64,000 nt of DNA from Lama guanicoe (Eukaryota), in assembly GCA_013239625.1 (NCBI GenBank), contig MU057202.1:4167101-4231100 (forward strand), written 5' to 3'. Both the position numbers and the translations under genes were made by a program. The number at the start of each line of letters is the position of its first letter. The stretch's first letter is position 1. The notes under the pieces were generated by a model. That model saw nothing but the letters and a program-made list of their open reading frames with translations. It was not told the origin of the DNA and did not search any database. Shown piece after piece: positions 5,022 to 63,150 of this stretch.

Positions 5022-7795
<2,774 letters not shown>

Positions 7796-27699: not shown

Positions 27700-29340
27700 T
27701 TCACCCTGACACTCAGAATTTCAAAAGAAGGTTCACTCTTTCCCTTTTTCATATTTGGAATTTCCTCGCTTATGCTGAGAAACCTGGCTCCATTATCCAT
27801 AACGTACTTGTTTGCTCAGTCTGGAGCAAAGTGCCTTCGGCATTGCTGACCTGTGCCAGTGGACAACCACTGACTAGCGTTTACTATGTGTTTACAGTTC
27901 TTTTTTGTCTTTACCTGAGGGCACACAGTCAAAATGCACTGGGGGTGTTTCTCCCCTTCATTGTGGGTGTGTAACTCATGTGAAATATGTTCTGTTTGTA
28001 TATTCCATTGCATTTCCCTGTCCTTGTTTACTTCTGTTTGTGCAATACAGTGACGTGGTTCCCAAAGTCAGAACTTTTTATAAGTTTTCTTATAAAAAAA
28101 CTTCACGATAGTCAGGTGTCACCCCTACCCTGCAACCCATCTCTTTCGTCTTTGATTTCTCCTTCCCATGTTTCTTTTTGTACAAATGACTAAGATACCT
28201 GTATATTTTCTTACTTCTCCTTCTTCCACAGAACATTTTATGTGTGGCCATTTTTCAATTAACAGATTTGGAAACTGCTCCATATCAACTGAGTTCTTTC
28301 TTATTCTGTCACTACCGCAGTCATCATCATTTATGTCTGCATTATATTCCATTGTGTGGAGCTGCCGTTTCACGTTTGACTACTGCATGAGACTAGCAGG
28401 CTGTTTCCTAGCTTTTGCAGTCACAAACGAGGCTGCAACAAATAATCTGTGCTTATGTATTTTCTTTTGTTGGAGGTGTATCATCAGGGAAAATCCTAAA
28501 ATCGGGATTGCTAAATCCTACAAAATCCATTTTTTATTAGTGTTTGATGCACGTCCATAAGAGATGTACCAATTTGCTTTCCCACCAGTAATGAATGAGG
28601 GTACCTGATACCCCACCAGCAGTATGTGTATTCATACTCTTTGATTATTTGATTAATGAAAAGTGGTATCTGTGTAGCTTTAATTTGCATTTCTCTGACT
28701 GACTGAGGTCAAACTTAGGCTTCAAGATCTAACTTATTTATGAGTTACATCTTCACTCCACTTTTCTATTAGATTTTTGGTATTTATTTTCCTTTCAGTC
28801 TTTAAGAATTCTTCATGTATCAGCGATATTAGCCCATTGCCTGTGAGATATTTTCTTCCTGGTGTCAGTTGCCTTGTTTGTAGTATCTTATTCTCATGGA
28901 AATGTTTTGTTCTGTTATATTTTCATATGGTCAAATTGATTCATCTTTTAAAATTTCATCTGGATTTTGAGTCATAGAAAGTCTTCCTCCACACCTGTGT
29001 CAAACAGGACAGGCATTCGTGTGTGTGTTCTGCAGTACTTGTTGGGTGTCAGTTTTTACATTCAGATCCCTCATCTGTTTCTTTATTCTTGTGTGTGCTG
29101 TGAGATATGAATTAACTGTTTCCAAATTTTAACCAGTTATCCTGCACTATTAAAAAAAAAGCCTATCTGTATCTATCTCTGAACTTTCTGTTTTACTCTA
29201 CAGATTGGAATACTACACGGACTTAATCACAGACGCTTCATGGTGTGTTTTAATGTCCAGCAGGGCTAGTCTCCTCATAGTTTGCTTTAAATAACTTTTC
29301 CTCGGTATTCTTTTATGCAACCTTTTTCAAGCACATATTT
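27700..29340 (-). mobile_element. Old L1 (L1M-type) fragments between DEF8 and CENPBD1
   Basis: T-rich, with antisense L1 motifs (ccaatttgctttcccaccag, gtggtatct..ttttaatttgcatttctctgact); boundaries approximate. Confidence 0.55.
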
Positions 29341-29482
29341 AAGTAAAATTTTTATGACAAAAGTTGATGCTCTCAAGTGTCAAAATGAAAATACCAGAAA
29401 CAGGGTTTCCAGGGATGTTACAGATCTGGGAGCGGAGGCGTGGCTGGCCTCACCCACCGAGGTCACAGGCCCTGAAGACAGA

Positions 29483-31114
29483 CTAGGACAGCTGCTGCTT
29501 TGAGCGCCGCTCTTTCTCACTGTGCAGCTCCCTGTAGCAGGTGATTGCATCACTGACTGCTCTTGAAACTTGCAGCGTCCACTCATCACCGGGGCTTCCA
29601 CTGGTGAGGACCTGCAGGCCCGCCTCGAAATGTGACAAGGCGGCCGACAGCTCTGTGGTGGTCAGCTGACGCAGGACAGGGGCAGCATCGTCACTGTCCT
29701 CCTCTCTTGCCGGCTGCTGTTCCAGCTGCATCAGCTCCTCATTCGAGAGATCTTCCTCATGGGAGCACAGCAGCTGGTCCACCGCAGCTCCCAGCACCTC
29801 TCCAAGAGCCACATTCTGGGCAAGGGTCACAATATTTTGTCGAAGTTGTGCAATGTTGTCTGTTTGGGAAACACTCTGGAACTGAACACACTCTGGCCAA
29901 ATCTTCTTCCACACGCTATTCATTGTTGCCGGTCTGAGCTCTTCCCAAGCTACTGCAATGTTGTCCACAGCATCCATGATGTTGTAGTTTCTCCAAAACT
30001 CCCTGATTATAGCTGTATCCTCCCCATCTGTGGCTTCTAGGATGTGCTCAAAAGTCCTTCTCAGGTAATGAGCTTTGAAGGCAGAGGCTACACCTTGACC
30101 CATGGGCTGGATCAGGTCAGCTGTACTGTCATGAAGATATTCCACTCTCACGTTATCAGACAGATCGCTCAAATTTACTGGGTGGCACGGTGCACTGTCT
30201 AAGATGAGCAGTGCTTTGTTAGTGAGATTATTTTGGGCACAGTATTTTTCAACTGCAGGGCAAAAAAAGTACGTAAACCATTCATGAAAGATGCTCCTGG
30301 TTGCCCAGGCCTTTTTGTTTGAGCGCCAAATTACTGGCAGATTGGGCTTGGAGTACCCCTTCAGAGCCTTGGGGTTTTCTGAGTGGTACACCAGTAAGGG
30401 CTTCAACTTGAAGTCCCCAGCTGCGTTGCCACCGAGCAGCAGCATCAGGCGTTCTCTGCATGACTTAAAGCCTGGCTCAGCTTTCTCTTCTACTGAAAGG
30501 AACGTTCCTTCAGGCATTCTTTTCCAATACAGACCTGTCTCATCTACATTAAAAACTTGCTGGGGGGTGTACTCACCTTCTTGGATAATGCTTTTCAGTA
30601 TTTCTGGATAGATATCCTTGTTGCCAGCGGCTGTGAGGTTCCTCTTGAAGTGAGGCAAACAATGGCGCTCCTTGAATCTCACAAACCACCCTTTACTTGC
30701 ACTAAACTTCTCTGTTTGAGAACTTTCACCCTGTTCACGCTGCAAGTCATCAAACAAACTCTTAGCCTTCTCCTGAATAACTGCGACACTCACGGGCACG
30801 TTTCGCTGGCTCTGGTCTTCAAGCCACACACGCAATAGGCGCTCCATGGTCTCCATGATTGCACTTCGGTGGCGAGTCAATCGAGAGGCTCTCAAGGGAG
30901 TAGCTATTTGTGAACTCGCTTTGATTTTCTCTTTATTATCTCGGATCGTTGCCACTGTGGAGACAGCGAGGCCTAAGGTCTTTGCAATTTGGCTGAGCTT
31001 TTCACCCACTTCAAATCGTCTTAACACTTCTAATTTTATGTCGAGCGTAATTGCCTTCCGTTCCCTTTTGGCACTCGGGGTGACCATTGCATTTAGGGGC
31101 CTTTTCCTAGGCAT
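29483..31114 (-). CDS. CENPBD1: CENPB DNA-binding domain containing 1: intact single-exon Tigger/pogo transposase-derived protein, 543 aa (CENP-B_N HTH, HTH_Tnp_Tc5, DDE_1)
   Basis: First ATG at 31114 (the ORF-track start at 31249 is GTG). [38 protein letters not shown] (HTH); [15 protein letters not shown]; [12 protein letters not shown]; [11 protein letters not shown]; QPMGQG. Syntenic position between DEF8 and AFG3L1. Confidence 0.9.
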
Positions 31115-31399
31115 CTCTGCCTCCAGAATGTACTGAAATGACAGCAGTCCCCGGTGCAAGAAAGCCTGTGGTTCCTCTATGCTCCCTTGCAGAACTAGGG
31201 AAAGCGAAAATGGGGCTTCGAGGAGGCGCAGGCTGACGACCTCGGACACGGGAAAGGGTCACCACAGGCCTGCCTAGCCACGCTGCCCAGAAACAGAGCA
31301 GTTCATTCTGCCCTGGGCAGTGTGGGCCTCCAGTATCAATCAGCGTCCAAATTCCTGGAAAGCAGGCACATCTAAACTGGCGTGTGCCTCCGTGATGCA

Positions 31400-32420
31400 G
31401 AACACAGAAATCCGTGCAAAAGAATAGCGCCGCCGGGCGGCGCACGGCGCACAGGCTCCCAGGTCCCGGAGGAAGCTCAGGAAAGCAGGCCAGCGCGCCG
31501 CCGCCGGCCTTCGCTTTGTGAGCCGCTTCCCAGGGAGGACCCCAGAAATGGGTGTTCTTGGAGATGCCCGATTTAAAATAAGTCTCGGGCCGCTGGCCAT
31601 CCTCTTAGCGCCTCGCTCGAGCCGGCCACTGGGGTTCCGGCGCCCAGCTGTCTGGGCAGGGCAAGCAGCGCTCACGTTCGTATCCTAAAGAGTCGGGCAA
31701 TAGAGTAGACACCTAACGAGAGGCCCCGGGAGCGCGCCCTGTCCTTACTGCGCACGCGTGAGGCTTCGCCGAGGTCGGCGCGGGGGCGTGGCGCCTTATG
31801 ACCTATTTGCCGCAATACTGCGCCTGCGCGCGCCCGAGCGGCGCGAGGTCAGGGTTGGAAATGTTGCAGTGGCTGGCGGCATGTCGGTGGCCGGGCCGCT
31901 CGCCGTGCTGTGGCGATGCGGCGGTGGCCCGCGAGGCGGCAGGACGGCCCGGGCAGGCTCGAGGGCCCTCGGAGCCGCCCGGCAGCTGTGCGGGGAGGTG
32001 CTGGCTCCCCGCCGGATCCGGGGGGCGGGAGTGGGGGGGGGGCGGCCGCGCTCGTCGCCGCGGTGACGCCATCCAGGTGCGCCGGCCGGCGCGGTGGGGC
32101 GCCGTGCAGGAACACGGTGAGAGAACGCGAGGGGAGCTCGGGAGCCGAGGGGCTGCGACCTCACGTCCGGCCGTGCGGCCCCGGGCTCCTCCCCGGCCCT
32201 GCGGCCGAGGCGGCTGCCCCTGGCCGGAACCTGTCTCCCTCTGTTCTCTGAGCCCCCGCCCTTCTCCCTGCGGCGCCTTCCGCCCTTGGAAAATTCCCGC
32301 TGCCCCTGCCTCCTTATTGCCCTCCCCAAGGAGCCCCACGTTGAGTGCACTGCGTTCAAGCCTCGCTCCACTGCGAACCTGCCCTGTCTTCTCGGGCACT
32401 CGCTCCGACTGCGAAGTGGT
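31400..32420. promoter_or_regulatory. Bidirectional CpG-island promoter shared by CENPBD1 (-) and AFG3L1 (+)
   Basis: Very high CpG density; the two start codons are ~750 bp apart, head-to-head; NRF1-like TGCGCACGCG (31749) and TGCGCCTGCGCG (31819). Confidence 0.8.
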
Positions 32421-35400
32421 GTCCTCCTGGGCTCAGCGGTAGTACTACCTCTGCTCTGTCAGTCTCGCAGAGTTGCTCTCCTATATGAAGATGGACATGA
32501 AGGAGTTTTATAAAGTGTTAACATAGTTGTTATTCATCGTTTTTGGAGCCCAGTTCCATCACTGTAATAATAGCTTACACTGTTTGAGGGCTTCCGTGCT
32601 AAGGGCTCTACAGGAATTATTTTATTTGAGTCATAACAATACTGCGGGTAGGCGCTTGTATAATCCCATTTTATAGAAGAGGAAATATAAGACCGCAGCT
32701 GGTCGGCTGCTGCTCCAGCCTCTTCACTTTTAGATACTTCTGTACTGTACGCCCTCCCCTGGGTTCGGTACTGTGAAATATTATTCCACATTTTACGGTT
32801 GCTTTTTTTCTTTTTTCTTTTTTGTATTGATATAGCCTTAGGGTGCTGTCACATTGAAGGACCTCAGTGGTTTTGGTTGTGAAGGGAAGAAGTTGGATGA
32901 TTTTTGAGTTCCTTCCCAGACTCTGTTATTCATCTGTTGAGTCTCCTAGCTGGGTGACATCATGGTGAGCAGGACAGGCAAGGGCTCTGCCCGGTTAACT
33001 GCTCTGCTTTGAGGGCTTGGTGATTTGTAGGCTGAGGGGCCATGCAAAGGCTGAGGGCGAAGTAGCAGTCAGCACTGTAGGTAAAGGATATACCCGTGCA
33101 GTCTGCACTCATCAGGTGGAACCCTATGTTCTGGAAGCTTCTGTGCAGGTATTTTTTCATTCAGTGAGTTTCCTGCACTGCCCCTGCCACCCAAGAGGGG
33201 GAACCAGACAACAAGCACGTATATAGCATGAAGGTGGTTTTACGAGGTGTGAAGGAAGAGAAGATAGAGCAAAGGCAGTGAGAATGAAGAGAAGGGAGTG
33301 GAGGAGAATGAATGCCACTTTGTCTCAGGTGGGATAGTCGGCTCCTGAAGGGAGGAGGGTACTGAGCGGTGGCTCGCCAGCAGGTGGACGAGGGTTGGTG
33401 AGGCTGCACGTGAGTGACTCTGATACACAGACCAGGGTCCCTTGATGTGTGATCTGGCGCAGAAAGGACAGTGGTGCTTTGCCTGTCAGCAATGGGGCAG
33501 CCTTGCTGAGCCAGCTTCATGTCTTGGCTTTGCTTATGCAAAGACCAATTTAGAAAGCTCATCTAAACCAAATGCCAAGAATGGATAGTAGACCCCTGTC
33601 TTTGAGAGTTGCAGCCTACCGAATGTGGTCCCCTGACTAATCAGAAAAGGATTAGATCTCAAAGAAAAAGAGTTGGATGTTTTATCAAGTTTTGGGTACT
33701 GAAGTGTCGTCCTTTGTACCTCTAGGGTTGTAGACCACCTGACACTGCTGTCGAGCCACCTGCATCGCGCTGATTCTGGAGAGACCTGGGAGGTTTGGGC
33801 ACCAGAGTCCTCATTGTGTACCTCCGGCTCTGGGTTATCGTACCTCAGGCACTTGTGGACCGCTCTGCACTTCTGCTTGTCTGCCCTGCAGTGGGAACAG
33901 TGGCAAGTACTTTCTCAGCAGGGGCATTGAGGGTCGGAGGAGGTGACAGAAGCACCTGGCGCACATCCGGTGCCTAGGGACCTGTGCTCCTTCATCTAAA
34001 TCTCTTTTCCCGGTGACGTGCCTCTGTGACGTCAGGTCCTCGTTCTGCTGTGCACGGTGACTGGCTGCAGCAGGGAGGTTCATTCCCAGTGCAGAAGTTT
34101 CAGGATCCCCAACACCGTTACCTGTGGCTTCTTTCTGAGTCCCCCTGCATAGATTTTCCCCGATTTTAACGTCTTTCTCATAGCTTACCTTACTTTTTAG
34201 TTCTTCTGGTCTTTGATAGGCGTATTTGAATACTTTGGCTTAGTAGCAAATTAATCATTAGGGAATGAGTTTACTTTGAAGAGTGCACTGCCTCACCGTG
34301 AAAGACAGCATGGCTGGAATAACACAGTTGTCACCCGCAGACCCGGCTTCATTAGGATAAAACACTGGGGCCATCCCGATCTGCGGCTGGGTTGGACTTC
34401 TCTGAGCACAGTCAGCACTGTGAGTGTGGTTGGTTCTGTCTTTTCAGTGTGGTGGCTTTTCTTGTGCCTGCTTTTGCTCTGGTGGCTTTCTTCTACAATA
34501 GTGGAAACTGAAATGTCTCTAGTCCTGTCCTTGACTGGTGTTAAGTACTGTTAGCAGCTTTTGGTAAAAGCTGTCATTTTCCACTTTGAGGACTAAAGAA
34601 AATACAGGGTCTGGAAAAATGTTTGCTTTCCTGACAAAAACACTTATCTTTGGCTGAATAAAGATAAATTGTAGTACCCTTTGGTTTTTAAATTTCACAT
34701 GATTTTAATGTTAGAGTAACTTTTTTTTTTTTGAGGCTGTAATATTTTCAGTGAGCAAAATTGCCTTGGGCAAGAGGTGATTAGTGTGCTTTTGTTTGAC
34801 AGCTGTAGCTATGAAAATTTGTCATGCATTTCTACATTGAATTTATTTTCCACTCATCCTGTTTGAATCATATGATAGACAAGGGCGTCCGGGTTATACC
34901 TCAGCCCGAATCCTGGCCCCTTTGGACCTGTAATGGCCACTGTGAGAAAATGCCCCATGGTATTGCAGAAGCAGCTAATTGTCTCTCGAGTTTCAATGCC
35001 TCTAGGGAACCTGCTTTCAGCAGCTGGCTCTGCAGACGAGACCGCCGTCATTTTCCTAGTGGCTGTGTTCAGAACCATCCAGAGGTACCTGTCTTTCCCC
35101 TTGCATCACTGACAGCACAAGGCTTATGGGAACTGAGTGTGGCTTCCTCTGTATCCTCCGTAGTGGGGAACTGGGGACAGGGTGCACGACCAGGAGGCTC
35201 TGTGCCCCGCCTTAGCTTCCACACTGAGTTACATTTAGCTCATCCTGTTTCTGGGTCACCTCTACATATTTATGGTTTTGATATATCGTTGAAGACGGTG
35301 AAAGAGAAACTTCCAGGAGGAAGTTGCTTGATAAATCTTCAGGGTTGCATGGGAGCAAACCTTTGTTCCTGTGCATCTGAGGGCTGGTTAGGCCAAATCT

Positions 35401-43746: not shown

Positions 43747-46700
43747 CCACTGCCTCCTGTCTTGAAGAGACTGGCAGGGATGGAGCGTGAAGACCCTGTG
43801 CATGGTGGGCTGTGACACCTCCATGAACCCCACCTCCCCATTCACAAGACATGGGGCCCCAGCACCTGTGTGTTGAGTTGTGGCTCCCTCCTCCCCCACT
43901 TTACATATTTTGTTTCTGTTCTTAAAGACTTAAAAAAATTACTTTATGGTCTCTTTTGAAATAATTAGATATTAACCCACAGCACTGACTGGAAATAAAG
44001 CAACATAAGCCCCCCTTTAAGTCTCTCCTCAGTTTCCAGGCATAATGGTGTCCACAGAAGGAGCACTAAAGTGTGTTACTAGGGCATGAATTGTGATTCT
44101 AACCCTCAAGTCAGTGCAGAGGAGGGCAGGCCATAGACAAGGAAGCACAGCAGTGGTGGCCACACAGCTGCTGCCTTCCTGCTGCCTTGGGGCCAGCTGG
44201 ACAGAGTCTCTGTGGCCACAGTATACACCACACCCTGTGACCCAGCTAGTCCTGCCTGGGAGCGTTTCCTGAAGAAATAACGTGCTCAGCTGTGGGGAGA
44301 GGGCACAGGGGGCTTTGTGTGTCTGCACCATCTGAACGTTTTACCATGAAACAGTAAACCGGTTTTACTGTGAACACGCATTCATCTCACAAGCAGAAAA
44401 TGTTAAACGGAAAGCATACCTCAGTCTGCCAGCACGGCGCACTCTTAGAAGGCATCCTTGGAGGGCGCCTGCTTCAGTGGGAGGGGGCGCTCTGCTCCCT
44501 CTGGCTCCATCCGTCCCCTTAAGAACCAGGTGTCACCTTTTTGTTCCAGGGAGCCATGCTCACAGGTCCTCCTGGTGCTGGCAAAACTTCTCACCAAGGT
44601 GACTGCGGGGGAGGCCAGTGTGCCTGTCATCACTGTGAATGGGTCAGAGTTCTTGAAAGTGTTTGTGGGCGTTGGGCCAGCTTGGGTAGGTGGATGCGCC
44701 CTATCCCTGCCCCGGGTCTGTGAGGGGCCCTGGCGGTGGGCACCAAGCAGACCACAGATGTGCAGGGGAGACCCAGGTGGGCAGACAGCAGCTGAGGTGG
44801 GTCAGGTTCCAGAAGAGGGGGCTCAAGTTGGTAGATTCTTCTTCCTGTCTTTGTGCCGGTAACAGAGTAGACTCTGTGGTGGACTCCTGTTTCAGGTTTG
44901 TGACATGTTTGTGATGGCCTGAAAAATGTCTCTTGTATCTTATTCATTGATGAGATGGGTGCAATTTGCAGGAAATGAGGCTGCAGGCACTTTGGTTGCC
45001 AGAGCGAGCAGGAGAACACCTTGAACCAGATGCTGGTGGAGATGGATGGTGAGACCCCACATTACCGTCTGCCAGGCCTTCATTTCTGTGCAGTAGCTCC
45101 CTGGGCGAGAACCCCTGATTGTTCTGTTTGAGAAAGGCTGTTTTCAGGCACACGTACTGGAGAGAGCTGTTCGGTTTCACACAGGCCCCACTGTCAGCAG
45201 GAGGACCAGGCGTTGGTGCCCTCCCTGGCCCGGGGCTCACAGGTGCCCTGGCTGCCTCTTGCACCAAAATCTCTCTCCTCTCTCCCCCTCGAGACTTGTG
45301 CTCAGAGAGGCTCCAGCCGAGTCTGACAGCCTGCCAGGACTGCTGACGCCTCCCGGGAAGTGTCTAGGCCTTCGTGCCAGTTTTTGAATTTTGGAAAGCT
45401 GTCTGCGGTCCTTTGGCAGATCTTGTCCTCTCTTCATCTTTGTAACTGTGTTGGGGTTCGCGAGATTACTCCTGGTTTGGTGATCCACTGGAAGGCCTCC
45501 GTGTTTAATTGTGTTCGTACTGTGGTTGACTTCAGTGACAGGACACAGGAGAATCACGGGGAAGAGGTGCCTGGGCCAGGCCCAGGGAAGCCGGCCACAG
45601 CTTCCAGAGGCCCTTCCTATGGAGTCTCAGGGCACACTTCCTCCCCTGGCAGCGGGCCAGATGCCACTCGGGAGTGCTGTCCGCCAGGGTCAGGTTTCCC
45701 AAGGGGGTTGGGTCATGCGGCGCCCTGCGCCAGCACATCCCGAGGGGGAAGGTGCGTGCTTGGTGTGAAGCACACTGTTTGCAGAGTGTAGACACAGGGG
45801 GCCCCACTTACCAGGGAGCAATGGAGACCCTCCTTAAATCCCGGGTCCCAGAGATGGTCGGGGGCCCTGTGAGCAGGCCTTGCCAAAGATGTGCTGGATG
45901 GGACTGCCGTGTGTGCTTTTCTGAACAGGCCAGAATGTTGCTCAAGTCTTCAGTTGTATTGAGTATCCAACAGTCATTCTAATTAAGCTGTTACTGTGTC
46001 CTGATGTCTGGAGGGGCTGATGGGAGGGACAGTTGGAGGGGAAGGAGGTTGGGAGCACTTCCTCTCCCCTGGCCCTGCCAGGTGCCCCGTTCTCCTTTGT
46101 ACGGCCATACCTGCCCCTGTCCCGTCTGGCTCCCTGGTCTGCAAGCCTTTCAGCACCTGGGTGATCCAGGGCACTGACAGTGGTAGGGGGAGGTCTCCCT
46201 GACCCCTGCAGGTTGTCGCGTGGTGTCAGAGGCTGGCAGGAACCAATAATGAGTTAGGATGGGGGTCCACACCCTGAGACTGGGCTGTGGGGGTCCCAGT
46301 TAGCTGAGGAATGGCTGGTTACCCACCAGTGCAGATGCCTCTCAGAGCAGTGGGGGACTGTGGGGGCCTAGCTGCTGGTTCCTGCGTGGCAGAGTGGGTG
46401 TCAGAGCCAGCCCTGGGTGTGAGTGTCTGCCCCACACTGAGCAGCCTGTGCAGTGTGCTGTGGAGCCAGTGGGAGGAGACGCAGAGCCAGCGTGGGGCTT
46501 CCCAGGGTGGGCAGTGGTTCTGGAAGTTCGGGCCAGGTGTGCAGGGGAGAGCAGGGGAGAGGAGAGGCCCCTCGGAGTGTGGTGCTGACCTGACAGGTGC
46601 CGACCGCACCCTCTCCTCGGCCTTACCTGCTCCTCTTGCGTCCAGGGTTCAACTCGGCCAACGACGTCATGGTGCTGGGCCGGCACCAACTGGCCTGGTG

Positions 46701-50050: not shown

Positions 50051-53000
50051 TAAATTTTTGAACCAAAAAAACTGGCTAAAAGCAATGGTGACTGACAAAG
50101 CAGCTTGCATCTCCTTCCAGTCCTTGACCTGGTCTGCTCTGGTCCCTTAACTGGAGACTTTCCTGTGACAGTCCGCCCTGGGGCGCCAATGGGACTGCTC
50201 CCACTGGCAGGCGCTCGTACCTCTAATGTTTGCACTGAAGTGGCCCTAATCACTGCCCGCCACCTCAGCCCTTTAGTTCCGGACAAACACTTTGAGCAGG
50301 CCATCGCGAGGATCATCGGAGGTGAGCTGGGCTGCCTTGAGGAGGGGACGTTCCAGCTCTGGCCTGCAGCAGGCTCACCCTGGGGCCCTAGCTTCGTGTC
50401 AGTGCACTGGAGCCGGGAGCGGTCTTCCAGACCGGAATTGGGAACTGGGGTCTGTCAGCAGCTCCCGTATTCTTTCTGGAGCAACATTGAGAATCTCAAA
50501 GATGAGGGACCTCCAGGGTGCTGAATCAGATCCAGGTTTGGGTTCTGACTGGACAGGAGGAATGTCTGCTGGGTGCTTCCCCCTGAGTGCTTGCAGGGGC
50601 CATCCCAGCGCTCCTACTGGGCCAGTGCTCTGTGAGGGGTGAAGGCTGGAGTAGGGGCTTCAGCGTGGGGGTAGGGGTCTCCTGAGGGCCTTTCCAGGAC
50701 GGAGGTCAGGGAGGTGTCTGTGTGGCCAGCAGCTCAGCTGTTCATACTCCGGCCCCATGGCTGTGATCACCAGCTCACCCAGACAGCAGGTTGGCCACCG
50801 TACTTTGTTTGAGTTTCCCTTTTTATCGACGTGTAACACAACCAGAGAAGTGCGGAGAGAGTATCAGTAGCCCAGGACAGTCGCCACAGCTGCTCAAGGG
50901 CGATCTGGTGGCTCTGGCGAGCTGACTGGCCACAAAGCTGCGCTCAGCACGAGGGGTCTGTGCCTTGCTGTGCTCTGTTTCCTGCCTGTGACTGGGCTGT
51001 AGACCATGCAGAGAATTCCTCCTCGTTTCTCGTACGGACAGCATCACTTCCCTCAAGCCATGAAAAGTAGCTAATCTCTCACCCACCCCAGAGCCATCTG
51101 CTGCTTGTAAGGGAGATGGGTTGGGACCTGGTGTTTCCATAGAGCAGAAGGCAGCATAGTGTCTAGTGTGTCTGGCATGTGGGGATGGCGCAGAGTGGGG
51201 TCTGAGGAGTGTGTGTGGAGCAGACGGCTGGGTCTGTTCTGGCTGGACACAGGCTCTGACCAGCCCCCAGCATGCCCCAAGTGCAGAGTGGGAACTTGGT
51301 GCCCACTCCTCAGCTGTCCGTTCCTCCTCTCCCTCTTACGAGGACTTTGATTTGTAGGTCTGGAGAAGATGACGCAGGTCCTCAGCCTGGAGAGAAGACA
51401 ACGGTGGCCTACATGGTGGTGGGCTGGTTCCTGGAGCACGCAGATCCCCTGTTGAAAGTTGGTCACGTCCCTTCGCGTGTCTGCACGGGGAGGGGCAGGG
51501 CCCACTCCCCTCCTAGCTCGTCCCTTGGTCTCCAGGCGTGGGTGCCTGTGTGTAGCATGTGGCCACATGGGCACAGTACCTTCAAGGTGGCAGCCTTTTT
51601 GCTTTCCAAGGAACGTAGTGGTCTAGAATTTGTTATAAGACTCCTTGAGGGGTGAGTGGGTAGAGAGCTGGGTGCTGGTTTCAGGAGGGGTTTGGGTGCT
51701 GGCCACCTGACATCTGCTGAGGTTTTACCCGATGGCTGGCTCCTCTGCAGGGTAGGTGGGGGGGGTTTCCATGTTAATTGTTGGGGTGACCCCCGTCAGT
51801 GGTGGGGCCCAGGGTCTGCTCTCCTTCCACACTCTTGCAGGGAGACCAGTGCTCAGAGGGGCAAGGTTGGTCCGGGATGCCCCAGGACTGGGGCTGTGTC
51901 TTGCAGGTGTCCATCATCCCCCGGGGCAAGGGGCTGGGCTTTGCCCAGTGTGTGCCCCCAGAGCAGTACCTGCACACGCAGGAGCAGCTCTTCGACTGCG
52001 TGTGCATGCTGCTGGGCAGCAGGGTGGCTGGAAAGCTGTTTTTCTGCCAGGTCACCACAGGGGCCCAGTATGACTTGAGGGAGGTAACCCAGAACGCCTA
52101 TGCCCAGGTAGAGCAGCGCTGGGTGGGGGGCTCTGCACGCGAGTCTGGCCAGGCTCACCTCCCTCCACCCCCACTCCAGATAGTGCAGTTTGGGATGAGT
52201 GAGAAGCTGGGTCAGATGTCCGATTTTCCCCAGCAAGGCGAAGGGCAGGCGGGGAGGCTGTACAGCGAGGCCACAGCTTGGCTTATCGATGAGGAGGTGA
52301 GGTACCTCATCAGCTCCACCCACGAGACCTGCTGACGCAGTGCTGGGAGCAGGTGGACAAGGCAAGTGCGGCTGGGGCGGCGCCCATCCTCCGGGAGTTC
52401 TGGTGATTCGCAGGCTGCTGACGGGCAGTGGGACTTGCAGGTGGGCAGGCGGCTGCTGGAGAAGGAGGTGCTGGAGCAGGCTGACATGGTGGAGCTGCTA
52501 GGCCCATGGCCCTTCACCGAGAAGACCACCTACAAGGAGTTTGTGGAGGGCACAGGCGGCCTGGAGGAGGACACATCCCTTCCCGAGGGGCTGAAGGGCT
52601 GGAACCTGGGGCAGCAGGAGGTGGGCACGGAGCCCAGCGTGTGGGAGAGCCTAGCCTAGTGCCTCTGCTTTGGAGGGCAGCTTCTGGAATCACTGGAAAA
52701 CAAACGAAAAATGTGGTGACTGCAAATGGGCAGTTGCAAATAAGGGTTTTCTGAGCCCACAGGTTCCTGCTCCCAGAACACGCCTGTTCCCTGAGAGGGG
52801 GCTGGGACCCTGTTCCTGAGTCATGGGGGACAGTGGTGGGCAGTGGGCTTCTCTGATGGGGACCCCCAAGGAGGGGGAGGGGGCTTTTGGCCCAGTTCAG
52901 AAATGCTCAAGGTTTGGTGAGGTGGCAGAATTAAGAAAAGGAAAATATAAGCCAGGTATCCAGGGAAATAGCTGTTTGGGTTGGTGGAAGGCCTGTTTGT

Positions 53001-55612: not shown

Positions 55613-58600
55613 CTAGTCTTCCTTGGGCCTCTCCACGGTGAGAAGTGTGTCCACGATGGTGGGTTGCCGCTCAGGGTCGCCAAAGGGCTGTTTCTCACGG
55701 TTCTTCTCAGCCCTGGTGCGGGTCCAGGATGGGGAGCGCAGACAGCCGGCCCGAGGCAGTGGGTGTAGGCCTGGTGGGAACACGGGGTGGGGTCAGTATG
55801 GCTTGGAGTCTCAGGTCACTCCTGCAGCTACTGGGTTGGGCATGTGTGTGCCTCCAACATGGGGTCTGGCCACATGTTGGGGTCCTCTGGGCACCAGCAA
55901 TGCGTACTTCTGGGTCTGGGTGCAGCGTGGGCTGGGGATTACCTGATGCCCTCAGGAGGGTCCTGGTGCAGCCGAGGCCCAGCTCTCCAGCCTGCATGGG
56001 TTGTGAGCAGGGAGGGAGGAAGGCTCTGGGCCCCCCACAGCCCTAGTGGCTCCTTTGCCATTTCTGAGGCCCGTGAGTTCTGGGCCAAGGGCAGCGCTTC
56101 CTGGAACTGAGATGAGGAGCGGCCACCCACTTTGTACTCAGCCTACTTGTGATTAAATCCATGTAGTGAATTCTACCTTCAGTGGGACAGTGGCTGTGGC
56201 CTTTTGTTGGCGTTTCAAGAATGAAAGTGAGGAGGAGTCGAAAGTTCCTTAAAGTTGGCATACAGGTGTGTAAAATGCAGAAACGGTGCATGAAGTGGCA
56301 CTTTGTTGACAAATACTTAAACACACATGAGAAATAAAGAAAATTGTTTTCCAAAATGAGGGTCTCCAGGGAGCGATGCTTGGTAGTCTTGGGCCCCAGG
56401 ACCTCCCACAGTGCCCTCTAGGCCCAGCACCAGCCCCACCTGCAGGCGAGTCGCTGGTCAGGTTCTCGTCATCTGAGTCGGCGAAGACCTCAGCCAGCTC
56501 CTGGTCGGACATGTCGGTCAGCTCGGTGAGGTCCAGGAGGTCAAAGTGCACCTCCAGGGAGGAGACGCTGCTCAGAGGCTCTGGGGACAAAGGAGCTTGT
56601 CAGCAGGGTGTTCTCCACCAAGGCTGCCCCATGAGGCCCAGGTGAAGCCCAGTGTGGGCCAGTGGCGGGGTGGGGGGCCGCAGACATGGCCCAGCTCTGT
56701 TCTTTGAGGCCCAGCGGAGCCCCTGAGAGCGGAGGAGTGTTTGGACAGGATGTGGACCCCGCCCTGTCCCCCAGCCTGTACGTACGTCGTCTCTCTGTGA
56801 CCTGCAGGAGCCCTGGAGCAGGTGCTGGGACGCCCACCTCCTCAGCCACAGGCGAGTGGAGGCTGTTCCCTGTCCCAGGGACTGGGGTACCCAGGGCAGC
56901 CTGTGGCACCGCAATCTCCTTAACTATTTCTGCAACAAAGAAGGTGTTGGTTACCCCAAGGGCACTGGGGTCTCCCACCTCCACCCCCAGGAGGAGACAT
57001 GGGATTCCACCTGACCCTGACCCCCACCCAGGACACAGGTGGGAGGACTTGAGAACCTCCTCTGAGGCCCCGGGCAGTGACCAGGGGTGGCCTTGGGCCA
57101 GAAAGCCAGGCAAGGGGTAGGGGCTTCTCTGAGGAGGCTGCCCTCCGTTACTCTGGGTGAGGAAAAGGCTGACTTCCAGACCCTCTGCCCTGAGCACCTG
57201 AGCAGGAATGAAGGCAGACCATGTAGGTCTCATGGGGACACTTGCTGGTCCTGTCAGAGACCCTAGTATCCCAATACTGTCACCTGTCTCGACTTTGGTC
57301 CAAACTAGGGTCCGGTGGTTGGTCATGTGTGTCCTTGGCCTTTGGTTCCCTTTAATCCACAATGGCGCCTGCTCACCTATGTGTCCTATGTTGTGTTTGA
57401 ATTCAAAAGAACACATTCTTGTAGCAAAAGAGTTACTGGATGGGTAGGTAGCAGCCTCTCCCCACCAGCCCCCCTCATGACGGGATGCTCGTCCAGGGTT
57501 TTACACGCGGTATTCCCCTGTAATTGCTCATATTTTTGTGTTTGTTTTCATGTGATTGCTCGTTTCTTGTACTTTTCGTCGGGTGAGAGCTGCAGGCTCT
57601 TCAGGGATCTGCTTGGTGAGGACGGTGCCACTCATAGATGGGGCCCCTACCCCATGGAGGCACCACCCTCCCCCGTCTCCACACAGCGGGGGGTCCCAAT
57701 CACCTGTCAGGCATATGCCCTGGGGCAGCTGGACCCCTTGGCTCCCCTGTGTCCCCACTGTTGCTGCCCTCTCCTGAGACCCCTCCACACAGATATCCCA
57801 CCTTCCCTCAGCGAGGGACCCCCTCGATGAACAGGTGCTCAGTCAAGAGTGAGGAGTGCCCTCCTGGCCCCTGTAGCAGTGTGGTGGGCTGAGCCACCCC
57901 AGGGGTGAGACTGAGGGCTGGGTGTGCACCAGCCACAAGAGCAGCTGCCAGGGGTCCTGGCTGGGGCGCCCAATGCCAACAGCTGCCTGTGAAGAGTGGG
58001 CCTGTGTGGTCAGTGGGCTGGACTCGCCTGCCGGGATGTGCGTCTGGAGGGTCCCCAGCTGAGTGGAAAGACAGTGACGTGGATTCTCAGGTGCAGAGCT
58101 GCCCTTGAGGTGGGCGTCTGCCCTGGGAAGCGGGACTGCGGGCGGGGCTTCCCAGCTCTGCCTGGTGCTGTGTCATCACACAGGGCCTGAGGCCGGACGG
58201 GGCTCGGGGTCTGGTTTCCACCTTGCTGCTGCATTCGGAACTTGGCTTCTGAGCATCTTCAAAGGGTAGAGTTACACCCACCAGTGTCAGGGCCTACCCA
58301 GCCCGCGATGGGCAAGGGCACCTTCCTAACCAGAGGACAGGAGAGCTGGGGGAACGGGAAATCTCCTGAGCCTCAGACCAGATTGAATCCTTGCTGAGGG
58401 ACAAGGGCTAAGAAACCTCTTGAGGGCCTTTGCTCTGCAGGACGCTGTTCTGTTTCCTCAAAGGGGAGGCACAGCAACCCGGTCCCCCTCACAGAGAGGC
58501 ATGTGTGGCCTGGGGTGGTGGGTGACCCTGCCTGGTAGGGGAGGCGCTGCCATCTGTCTGGAGCCTCCAGACAGGGTAAGTGGCTCTTGGTTAAGAACAG

Positions 58601-61600: not shown

Positions 61601-62604
61601 TTTGGTCTCCAGAGGAGGCCCCTGATGTGGCTGGGGGACCCCCAGTGGGTCCATATGTGGTCTGAGAGTGGTTCCTTGGGATGAGACCTCCAGGAAACCT
61701 CGGGTGCATCTGGGGCCTGGCCTGGCCAGGCGGGTAGAGGAGCCCGGCAGTTTGCATCCAAGTTCCTAGGCCCAAAGCACAGGGAAACCCTTTCTGAAAG
61801 GGGAGGCTGCTAGACTTTCCCTCCCACCACTAGCCATCACCCTGCCTAGGGCCATACTTCAAGGGGAGAGTTAGGTTCTTAACCGTCAGAGTTCCCGATG
61901 GCTGACAGGGGCTGTGAGGAGGGGTCACTCCGTACACATCTGACCTCCCTGATGTGTACGCTCCTGGGCCGGGCCGCGGCCAGCAATCCCTGCGGGCGTG
62001 GGACCCCCCCGCAGGCCGTGCCCGGTGCGGTCCCCACAACGAGACCCTATCTCAGACCCGTGCCCAGCAGGATCCTGGCTGCGGCCTCCCCGCCCTACCC
62101 CCAGGGAGTCTGGGGCGAACAAAGCAGACACGCGGCCTGGAGGGTAGCATCCCCCCACGTCTCGCTGACCTGGACTCCAAACTCTGGACCCAGCACGCCC
62201 CATCCCCCAGATCCCCGGCTCGGCCTGGAGGGGGTTCAGGACGAAACTCCGGGCCGCCCACTCAGGAGCGCGCCAGGCACGGCAGCCCAGGACCGGAGCG
62301 GGGAGGACGAGGGGGCGGGGACGTGGTCCGTGCGACCCCAGCTCAGCGCGGGGGCCGTTCCCGGGAGGTGCCCCCCGCCCGACTCCCCGCGCGCGGCGTA
62401 CTAGGCTTCCCTCGCTGGGCGCGGAGGGTACTCGGAGCGGCCAGTGGGTCTTCGCAGCCCCGGGGCGCGGCCGAGGAATGGGCCCGGGGTGGGGGGCGGT
62501 GGGGGGAAGGGGCTGCGGGCCGCTGCAGGGAAGGCGCAGCTCGAGGATTCCCAAAGGCTGGGGCCGCACTCACCTCCAGGGCTGGCGCCCTCCGGGGGCT
62601 CCAT
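55613..62604 (-). CDS. DBNDD1: Dysbindin domain-containing protein 1, 157 aa: complement(join(55613..55770,56440..56580,56786..56929,62574..62604))
   Basis: [10 protein letters not shown]|[23 protein letters not shown]|[40 protein letters not shown]..|[18 protein letters not shown]. All junctions are GT-AG; total 474 nt. Confidence 0.95.
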
Positions 62605-63150
62605 GCGGCCGGTAGGGTCTGGAAGGGGCGGTGGCGGCGTCACCCAGCCCTTGTGCCCCTGTAGCTGCGGCGGCGGCTCGGCCCCAGCTCCCGGCGCAGC
62701 GCATCGGGGCAGCAGCCTGGGGGCCGCGGCGGCGGGGAGGAGCGCGCGGGGCGGGGCGGGCAGCTGCTCCGGGGCCCCAAAAAAACCCCCAGCTCCGCAG
62801 CACAGGTGCGGTCCCGCCCCGCCCCGCGCGCGCCCCCTGTCGGCCCCAGACCCTGCAGACTCCCTCGCCTGCGGATCGCGCCCCTCCTGCGGACCCACCC
62901 GGACCTGGTGGCTGCCTCCCACTCCTGGCCGGGACTCTGCGGCCCTTGCGCGCGCCCTCATCCAGCAGCCGCGCCGACTTGCGTCCATTTGTTTACCCCC
63001 ACATATATCTGGGGGCGCCAACTACGTGCTGGAGCTCCGCTGGGCATGGAGGGGCGGGCACAAGCGGAGCCTAAGGCGGCGCCAACACAGATTGTGATAA
63101 ATGATCAGAAGAGGCACGGGGGGCGGGGCGGGGGGGGCAAGAGCTTATAA
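61950..63150 (-). promoter_or_regulatory. DBNDD1 CpG-island promoter and exon 1
   Basis: High CpG density and multiple GC boxes (62747-62760, 62813-62826, 63121-63137). Confidence 0.8.

Follow-up and report, generated by a model that had tools for sequence, protein, structure and literature searches.

A complete transposase reading frame in a mammalian chromosome raises the question of whether it belongs to a mobile element, to a relic that has stayed open by luck or to a gene of the host. We address this question for an open reading frame (ORF) of 543 codons at positions 29483–31114, on the minus strand, of the window, by which we mean the whole 64-kb stretch of Lama guanicoe DNA that was analysed. 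We propose, with a probability that we put at about 90%, that the ORF is the Lamini orthologue of CENPBD1, a captured Tigger transposase that is catalytically dead and that most likely serves as a nuclear, sequence-specific DNA-binding protein of the host. That this gene is domesticated, constrained and lost in most primates is supported by the comparisons presented herein; nuclear localization, DNA binding, loss of catalysis and oligomerization are properties that we infer from the sequence.

The gene as such has been described. In their survey of pogo-derived host genes, Gao et al. (2020; Mob DNA 11:25, PMC7386202) placed CENPBD1 among 12 such genes, assigned it to the Tigger family, reported a protein of about 540 residues together with its domains and a DD32G signature, and dated its origin to Theria. 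They found it continuously present in Laurasiatheria and absent from Lagomorpha, Scandentia, Xenarthra and most primates and rodents. A length of 543 residues and DD32G are given in their Table S2 both for Vicugna pacos and for each of three Camelus species. The gene, its dead triad, its selection regime and its patchy loss are therefore matters already annotated in RefSeq and published in 2020 (PMC7386202). Our literature search found no functional test of the full-length CENPBD1 protein.

Gene structure and genomic context

The coding sequence starts with the ATG at 31114 and ends with a TAG at 29485–29483, with zero internal stops, and is apparently a single coding exon; its product is one residue away from the alpaca protein XP_031527716.1. 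The first-pass annotation, made from the letters of the window, had reported a stop-free frame of 543 codons, and it is confirmed here for the minus strand. The same frame is open for 45 codons further upstream, to a GTG at 31249. A splice acceptor (TTTCAG, 31133–31138, minus strand), predicted from sequence, ends 18 nt 5′ of the ATG, so that the upstream open stretch is more likely to be intron or untranslated region. A CpG island (31001–33000; GC content 0.56–0.62, CpG observed/expected 0.76–0.89) lies immediately 5′ of the gene; it presumably contains the CENPBD1 promoter and a 5′ non-coding exon, and candidate donor-like sites are found within it at 31748 and 31675. On the 3′ side, a candidate poly(A) signal, AATAAA, lies 395 nt past the stop codon (29082–29087, minus strand) and a second candidate, ATTAAA, is located at 29249–29254 on the same strand. 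Runs of RNA-seq from at least three studies contain, as assembled contigs, 0.32–0.60 of the sequence words sampled from 29000–31200, a content that may also reflect DNA carry-over or the transcript of a relative. Five of the runs holding this region are recorded as RNA and one is guessed to be RNA, and their word content hints at transcription in camelid tissues.

CENPBD1 lies on the minus strand between two genes on the plus strand, DEF8 and an AFG3L1-like gene, and the translated exons in the window thereby bear out the DEF8-AFG3L1 interval to which the locus had been assigned at first reading. Exons of DEF8 are recognized at 17.6, 19.0 and 22.9 kb, the last of which encodes the Rubicon-homology domain (RH_dom, E 6e-8). 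Upstream of DEF8 are exons of a beta-tubulin gene of the TUBB3 type (5022–6052, plus strand), identified by a weak Pfam match to the Tubulin family; the large last exon of this gene is interrupted by runs of N at 6937–7159 and 7419–7750. The AFG3L1-like exons (AAA, M41) are located at 44587–44691 and 51895–52323, and match Peptidase_M41 (E 2e-26) and the structure of human AFG3L2 (6NYY, E 1e-36). Their recognizable sequence contains several non-conservative substitutions, of which R to W in GPARV and D to Y in GAQDDL are examples, and the sequence that separates two of the M41 exons remains in frame. The CpG island at 31001–33000, located between CENPBD1 and the AFG3L1-like gene, is probably a bidirectional promoter shared by the two. 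Further along, an exon of DBNDD1 (56252–56599, minus strand; Dysbindin domain, E 2e-25) and a second CpG island found by the window scan at 62001–63000 fit the gene order expected beyond AFG3L1.

Orthologues and phylogeny

The guanaco protein is identical to that of the alpaca (XP_031527716.1) at 542 of 543 positions, the exception being residue 158, which is R here and T in alpaca and camels, and it is identical to the three Camelus proteins at 531–532 of 543 positions (11–12 differences). By these distances the window belongs to a Lamini camelid (alpaca, llama, guanaco or vicuna). The exact sequence is absent from a collection of 15 billion proteins. The camelid entries of RefSeq and of Gao et al. 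(2020) represent the same gene, with a length of 543 residues, the CENP-B_N, HTH_Tnp_Tc5 and DDE_1 domains, DD32G and the same neighbours. About 40 further full-length proteins of 539–549 residues, with 67–88% identity, come from carnivores, bats, horse, whales, hippo, mole, Afrotheria and marsupials, while the next-best camelid protein after CENPBD1 itself is 52% identical. The gene is intact in alpaca, in the three Camelus species and in about 30 other therians.

In a maximum-likelihood tree of 34 CENPBD1 orthologues and five outgroups, the thirty-odd orthologues group in one clade (SH-aLRT 99%), the topology of which mirrors mammalian phylogeny: marsupials, Afrotheria, carnivores, bats and Cetartiodactyla are each recovered, and the camelids are placed beside hippo and whales. 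Because the gene tree follows the species tree in this way, we conclude that a single gene has descended vertically.

Not all relatives retain the gene in this form. The models of pig (P0062), muntjac (P0042), cattle (P0069) and musk deer (P0140) are truncated, are gapped or have an unrelated tail, in contrast to the intact genes of camelids, hippo and whales. They may represent independent decay within Cetartiodactyla and, since the gene models look truncated, CENPBD1 would appear to be dispensable in some relatives. In primates, a search with the N-terminal region returned only short or “low quality” products limited to the helix-turn-helix (HTH) part, namely 186 residues in orang-utan (76% identity) and 102–169 residues in Old World monkeys (61–68%), and a 2025 paper treats the locus in humans as a pseudogene, CENPBD1P (PMC11929002). 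The human locus had been described at first reading as a short HTH-only product or pseudogene and the full gene as lost in humans, and both statements are supported by these data.

Domain architecture and predicted structure

All three domains expected of a Tigger-type transposase are found by Pfam, in agreement with the two CENP-B-type HTH domains and the whole DDE_1 domain noted earlier. The psq-type HTH, CENP-B_N, spans residues 16–67 (30914–31069; E 3.6e-7) and the second DNA-binding domain, HTH_Tnp_Tc5, spans residues 88–154 (30653–30853; E 2e-15), with both matches exceeding the Pfam gathering scores. The RNase H-like DDE domain (29909–30556), which is delineated by Pfam, AlphaFold2 and Foldseek together, has its first β-strand from residue 187, and the DDE_1 match within it (residues 221–402, E 2.3e-40) is complete, covering profile positions 2–177 of 177. 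These features, like those that follow, are encoded on the minus strand. Short basic motifs are present at both ends of the protein, PRKRP at residues 2–6, KRERK at 16–20 and KERRSK at 534–539, and these three stretches, together with an acidic patch toward the C-terminus, lie where the first-pass annotation had put them.

The structural model used here comes from an AlphaFold2 run with 72 sequences (pLDDT 70.5); a first model, built from 26 close sequences, reached a pLDDT of 51 and was discarded. In the model, the DDE core is predicted to have the canonical order β1-β2-β3-α-β4-α-β5-α, with D191 on β1, D306 at the end of β4 and G339 opening the helix that follows. Foldseek matches the model to the transposase domains of Mos1, Sleeping Beauty and Metnase/SETMAR, and its N-terminus to CENP-B (1HLV). 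The DNA-binding domain of CENP-B is also the sole solved structure that the CENPBD1 sequence itself matches. Taken with the Pfam matches, these similarities uphold the assignment of the protein, made at first reading, to the Tigger/pogo-derived CENP-B/TIGD/JRK class. The last 141 residues (403–543) have zero Pfam matches even at E ≤ 10, the CENP-B dimerization domain (PF09026) included, and zero sequence matches in the PDB. They are modelled as a disordered acidic stretch followed by two long helices. The acidic stretch (residues 451–480, 29675–29764; net charge −10) has low model confidence and is poorly conserved. The predicted helix pair (residues 486–505 and 511–542; 29489–29659), which ends with the KERRSK motif, is seen in the alignment to be conserved also among transposon-type relatives.

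A splice donor inside codon 180

The protein may not be the only product of this gene. A consensus 5′ splice site, AAG/GTGAGT (30571–30579, minus strand; last exonic base 30577), lies inside codon 180, and sequence motifs for in-frame acceptors are found at codons 306 (30199/30198) and 332 (30121/30120). Protein models from cat, two bats, horse, donkey and cattle, together with two short Logan contigs, exit the ORF exactly at this donor, and the resulting products either are HTH-only proteins of about 187 residues or are devoid of the DDE core. On the basis of these motifs and models it is conceivable, although in our judgment doubtful, that the donor is old and conserved and that the gene would encode a short HTH-only product of about 187 residues alongside the full-length, catalytically dead transposase, in which case the short “human-type” product would be the second isoform, surviving the decay of the DDE part. 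If so, CENPBD1 of primates would have been reduced to a regulator with DNA binding as its only activity, rather than simply lost, and competition between both isoforms for shared sites, in the manner of transposon-encoded repressors, would be conceivable in camelids.

A stronger version of the same idea, which we regard as improbable, is that the HTH-only protein produced by codon-180 splicing is the main product under selection and that the full-length protein is secondary. It would account for the consensus donor and its use in the models of six other mammals and in the Logan contigs, for primate remnants that are of the same short type and for the distribution of conservation along the protein. 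Among 32 therians, the first HTH is the best conserved, with 67% invariant columns, followed by DDE_1 with 48%, the second HTH with 39% and the linkers and acidic stretch with 12–17% (chi-square p = 3e-8 for heterogeneity among domains). Against this version, DDE_1 is itself strongly conserved, with a mean majority of 92% in addition to its 48% of invariant columns, and the frame remains open through residue 543 across these lineages. Neither property is expected of a 3′ part that is not translated.

Selective constraint

Could the ORF of camelids be a dead relic that drifts neutrally and is open by luck? The losses elsewhere give this proposal its force, as primates, rodents and a number of further orders have lost CENPBD1 or retain it in truncated form (PMC7386202 and the N-terminal search described above) and the models of pig and ruminants look damaged. 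We nevertheless consider it very improbable, for reasons that concern the camelid lineage specifically. The frame is intact in the guanaco, the alpaca and three Camelus species. From the cetartiodactyl node to the camelids the tree measures 0.083 substitutions per site, the corresponding values being 0.062 (hippo) and about 0.06 (whales), and the entire camelid branch is not accelerated relative to these constrained sister lineages; the branch of a pseudogene is expected to be several times faster. When neutral evolution of the coding sequence was simulated, the proportion of runs that left the ORF open was 27% at 2% divergence, 4% at 5% and 0.2% at 10%, and the amino acid identity expected at 2–5% divergence was 96–90%, compared with an observed identity of 98% between Lamini and Camelus. 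The neutral rate in mammals was assumed to be 1–2.2e-9 per site per year. Applied to the split of Camelini and Lamini 11–25 My ago (PMC1939714), this assumed rate gives a neutral divergence of 2–11% and an expected amino acid identity of 80–96%, which is again below the 98% observed.

The constraint that our protein-level comparisons suggest agrees with the published Ka/Ks of CENPBD1, 0.177 ± 0.098 (n = 62, camelids included; PMC7386202). Purifying selection had been proposed at first reading from the survival of a 1.6-kb frame beside a decayed gene. The conclusion is supported, in that intact orthologues extend over a deep tree and conservation is structured by domain; the appeal to a decayed neighbour is a weak argument. 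It should be noted that a frame that has been open since the ancestor of alpaca and llama is by itself weak evidence, as that branch is short. The related claim that the gene is functional in this species is likewise favoured by intact orthologues and by constraint, and its basis is evolutionary.

Transposon hallmarks

The first-pass annotation had seen no terminal inverted repeats (TIRs) and had named flanking TIRs as an observation that would speak for a recent insertion, and in both respects the searches confirm their absence: no inverted repeat brackets the ORF, and the 12-mer of the Tigger1 TIR, as given in the supplementary material of Gao et al., is matched nowhere within 4 kb of it at two or fewer mismatches. 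Searches of the 64-kb window with tblastn and blastn returned no second copy of CENPBD1. That the ORF is a young and potentially autonomous Tigger copy, open through its youth, is consistent with an end-to-end identity of 50–57% to Tigger proteins of shark, octopus and turtle and with the decayed Tigger1 copies recorded in camelid genomes (Gao et al., 2020, PMC7386202). Against it stand the lack of TIRs and of the Tigger TIR motif near the ORF, the single copy in the window, the replacement of the third catalytic D (see below), the CpG island upstream with the predicted acceptor 18 nt before the ATG and orthologues, shared by alpaca, camels and about 30 further therians, whose tree resembles that of the species. 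We consider this reading to be in practice already refuted and give it next to no weight.

Catalytic site

The alignment identifies the three positions of the catalytic triad as D191 (FNVDETG; codon at 30542–30544), D306 (LILDSAP; 30197–30199) and G339 (QPMGQGV; 30098–30100), the last of which occupies the position of the third catalytic D, in accordance with Table 1 and Table S2 of PMC7386202. The spacing of 32 between D306 and G339 gives DD32G, and the DDD triad of active Tigger elements is absent. Nearly all CENPBD1 orthologues have G at position 339 and a few have S, C or A; D is found there in the Tigger-like transposases of shark, octopus and turtle. The first two carboxylates, D191 and D306, are present in nearly all eutherian orthologues. 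In the marsupial proteins (P0043–P0050) all three catalytic residues are replaced (G, E, G), and in that of the mole Talpa (P0041), on a long branch of 0.16, the first is replaced by V, with the full ORF retained in both cases. Such replacement without loss of the ORF implies that catalysis is not the property that has been preserved. DDE/D enzymes, that is, RNase H-like transposases such as Mos1, require all three residues to bind two metal ions. The retention of D191 and D306 across nearly all eutherian orthologues is what would be expected if the protein were still a nuclease or recombinase with a DD-only active site, but this requirement, the non-acidic residue (mostly G) at the third position in all orthologues and the intact ORFs of marsupials and mole make that reading a negligible one.

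Proposed origin and role of CENPBD1

Based on these data, we put forward a hypothetical scheme for the origin and role of CENPBD1. We propose that a transposase of the Tigger family (pogo superfamily) was captured between DEF8 and AFG3L1 early in therian evolution, and that it came to be placed behind a CpG-island promoter. The protein has kept the full architecture of the transposase, with two HTHs, the DDE domain, the acidic linker and the C-terminal helix pair, and has lost the third catalytic D. Its basic N- and C-terminal motifs may mediate entry into the nucleus, where the bipartite HTH is predicted to bind specific DNA sequences, with no cutting or joining of the bound DNA. Plausible targets are sequences descended from the ends of Tigger elements, because it is these ends that the ancestral domain recognized. 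By analogy with other domesticated ITm transposases, the DDE fold and the C-terminal helices might serve assembly or the binding of partners.

Comparison with related transposase-derived proteins

The proposed scheme can be set against several known systems. The transposases of the Tigger1 type, or TIGD1-like, are colinear with CENPBD1 over the full length, at 50–57% identity, and have the same three domains and the C-terminal helices. They differ in that they keep the third D and are associated with TIRs, TA duplications and many copies, whereas CENPBD1 in the window has G339, no TIRs, one copy and what is presumed to be a host promoter. The catalytic domains of SETMAR/Metnase, Mos1 and Sleeping Beauty have by structure comparison the same RNase H-like fold and belong to the mariner/Tc1 branch, with a sequence identity to CENPBD1 of 10–13%. 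SETMAR retains partial nuclease activity with DDN.

CENP-B resembles CENPBD1 in its bipartite N-terminal HTH (1HLV), its degenerate DDE domain and the acidic stretches that precede a helical C-terminus. Unlike in CENP-B, the dimerization domain PF09026 is not matched in CENPBD1, and CENP-B descends from the pogoR family and not from Tigger (PMC7386202). The host genes JRK, JRKL, TIGD2, TIGD5 and TIGD7 are Tigger-derived, have taken the same route of domestication with the same set of domains, and have Ka/Ks values well below 1 (PMC7386202). They are independent captures at other locations that have been retained throughout mammals, whereas CENPBD1 has been lost repeatedly.

CENPBD1 is a fair example of a transposase-derived, putative DNA-binding protein that has gone uncharacterized and is missing from human and mouse, and its absence from these two species is probably why its function has not been studied. 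Functional work would need cells of carnivores, ungulates, bats or afrotherians. For genome annotation more generally, a long open transposase ORF in a mammal should first be checked against the 12 pogo-derived host genes already known.

Three further observations concern the wider family. A 43-residue fragment (P0121) occurs on at least 1000 metagenome contigs and is most likely human carry-over, and a cluster of 187-residue proteins with 48 members (P0146) may be human. There is also a second widespread set of mammalian “TIGD1-like” proteins outside the window, comprising P0051, P0053, P0055, P0070 and P0105 and a group with 52–56% identity (P0084–P0118). Some of these are fused to a SCAN domain (PF02023), and they look like separate captures of Tigger elements or fusions between host and transposase sequences.
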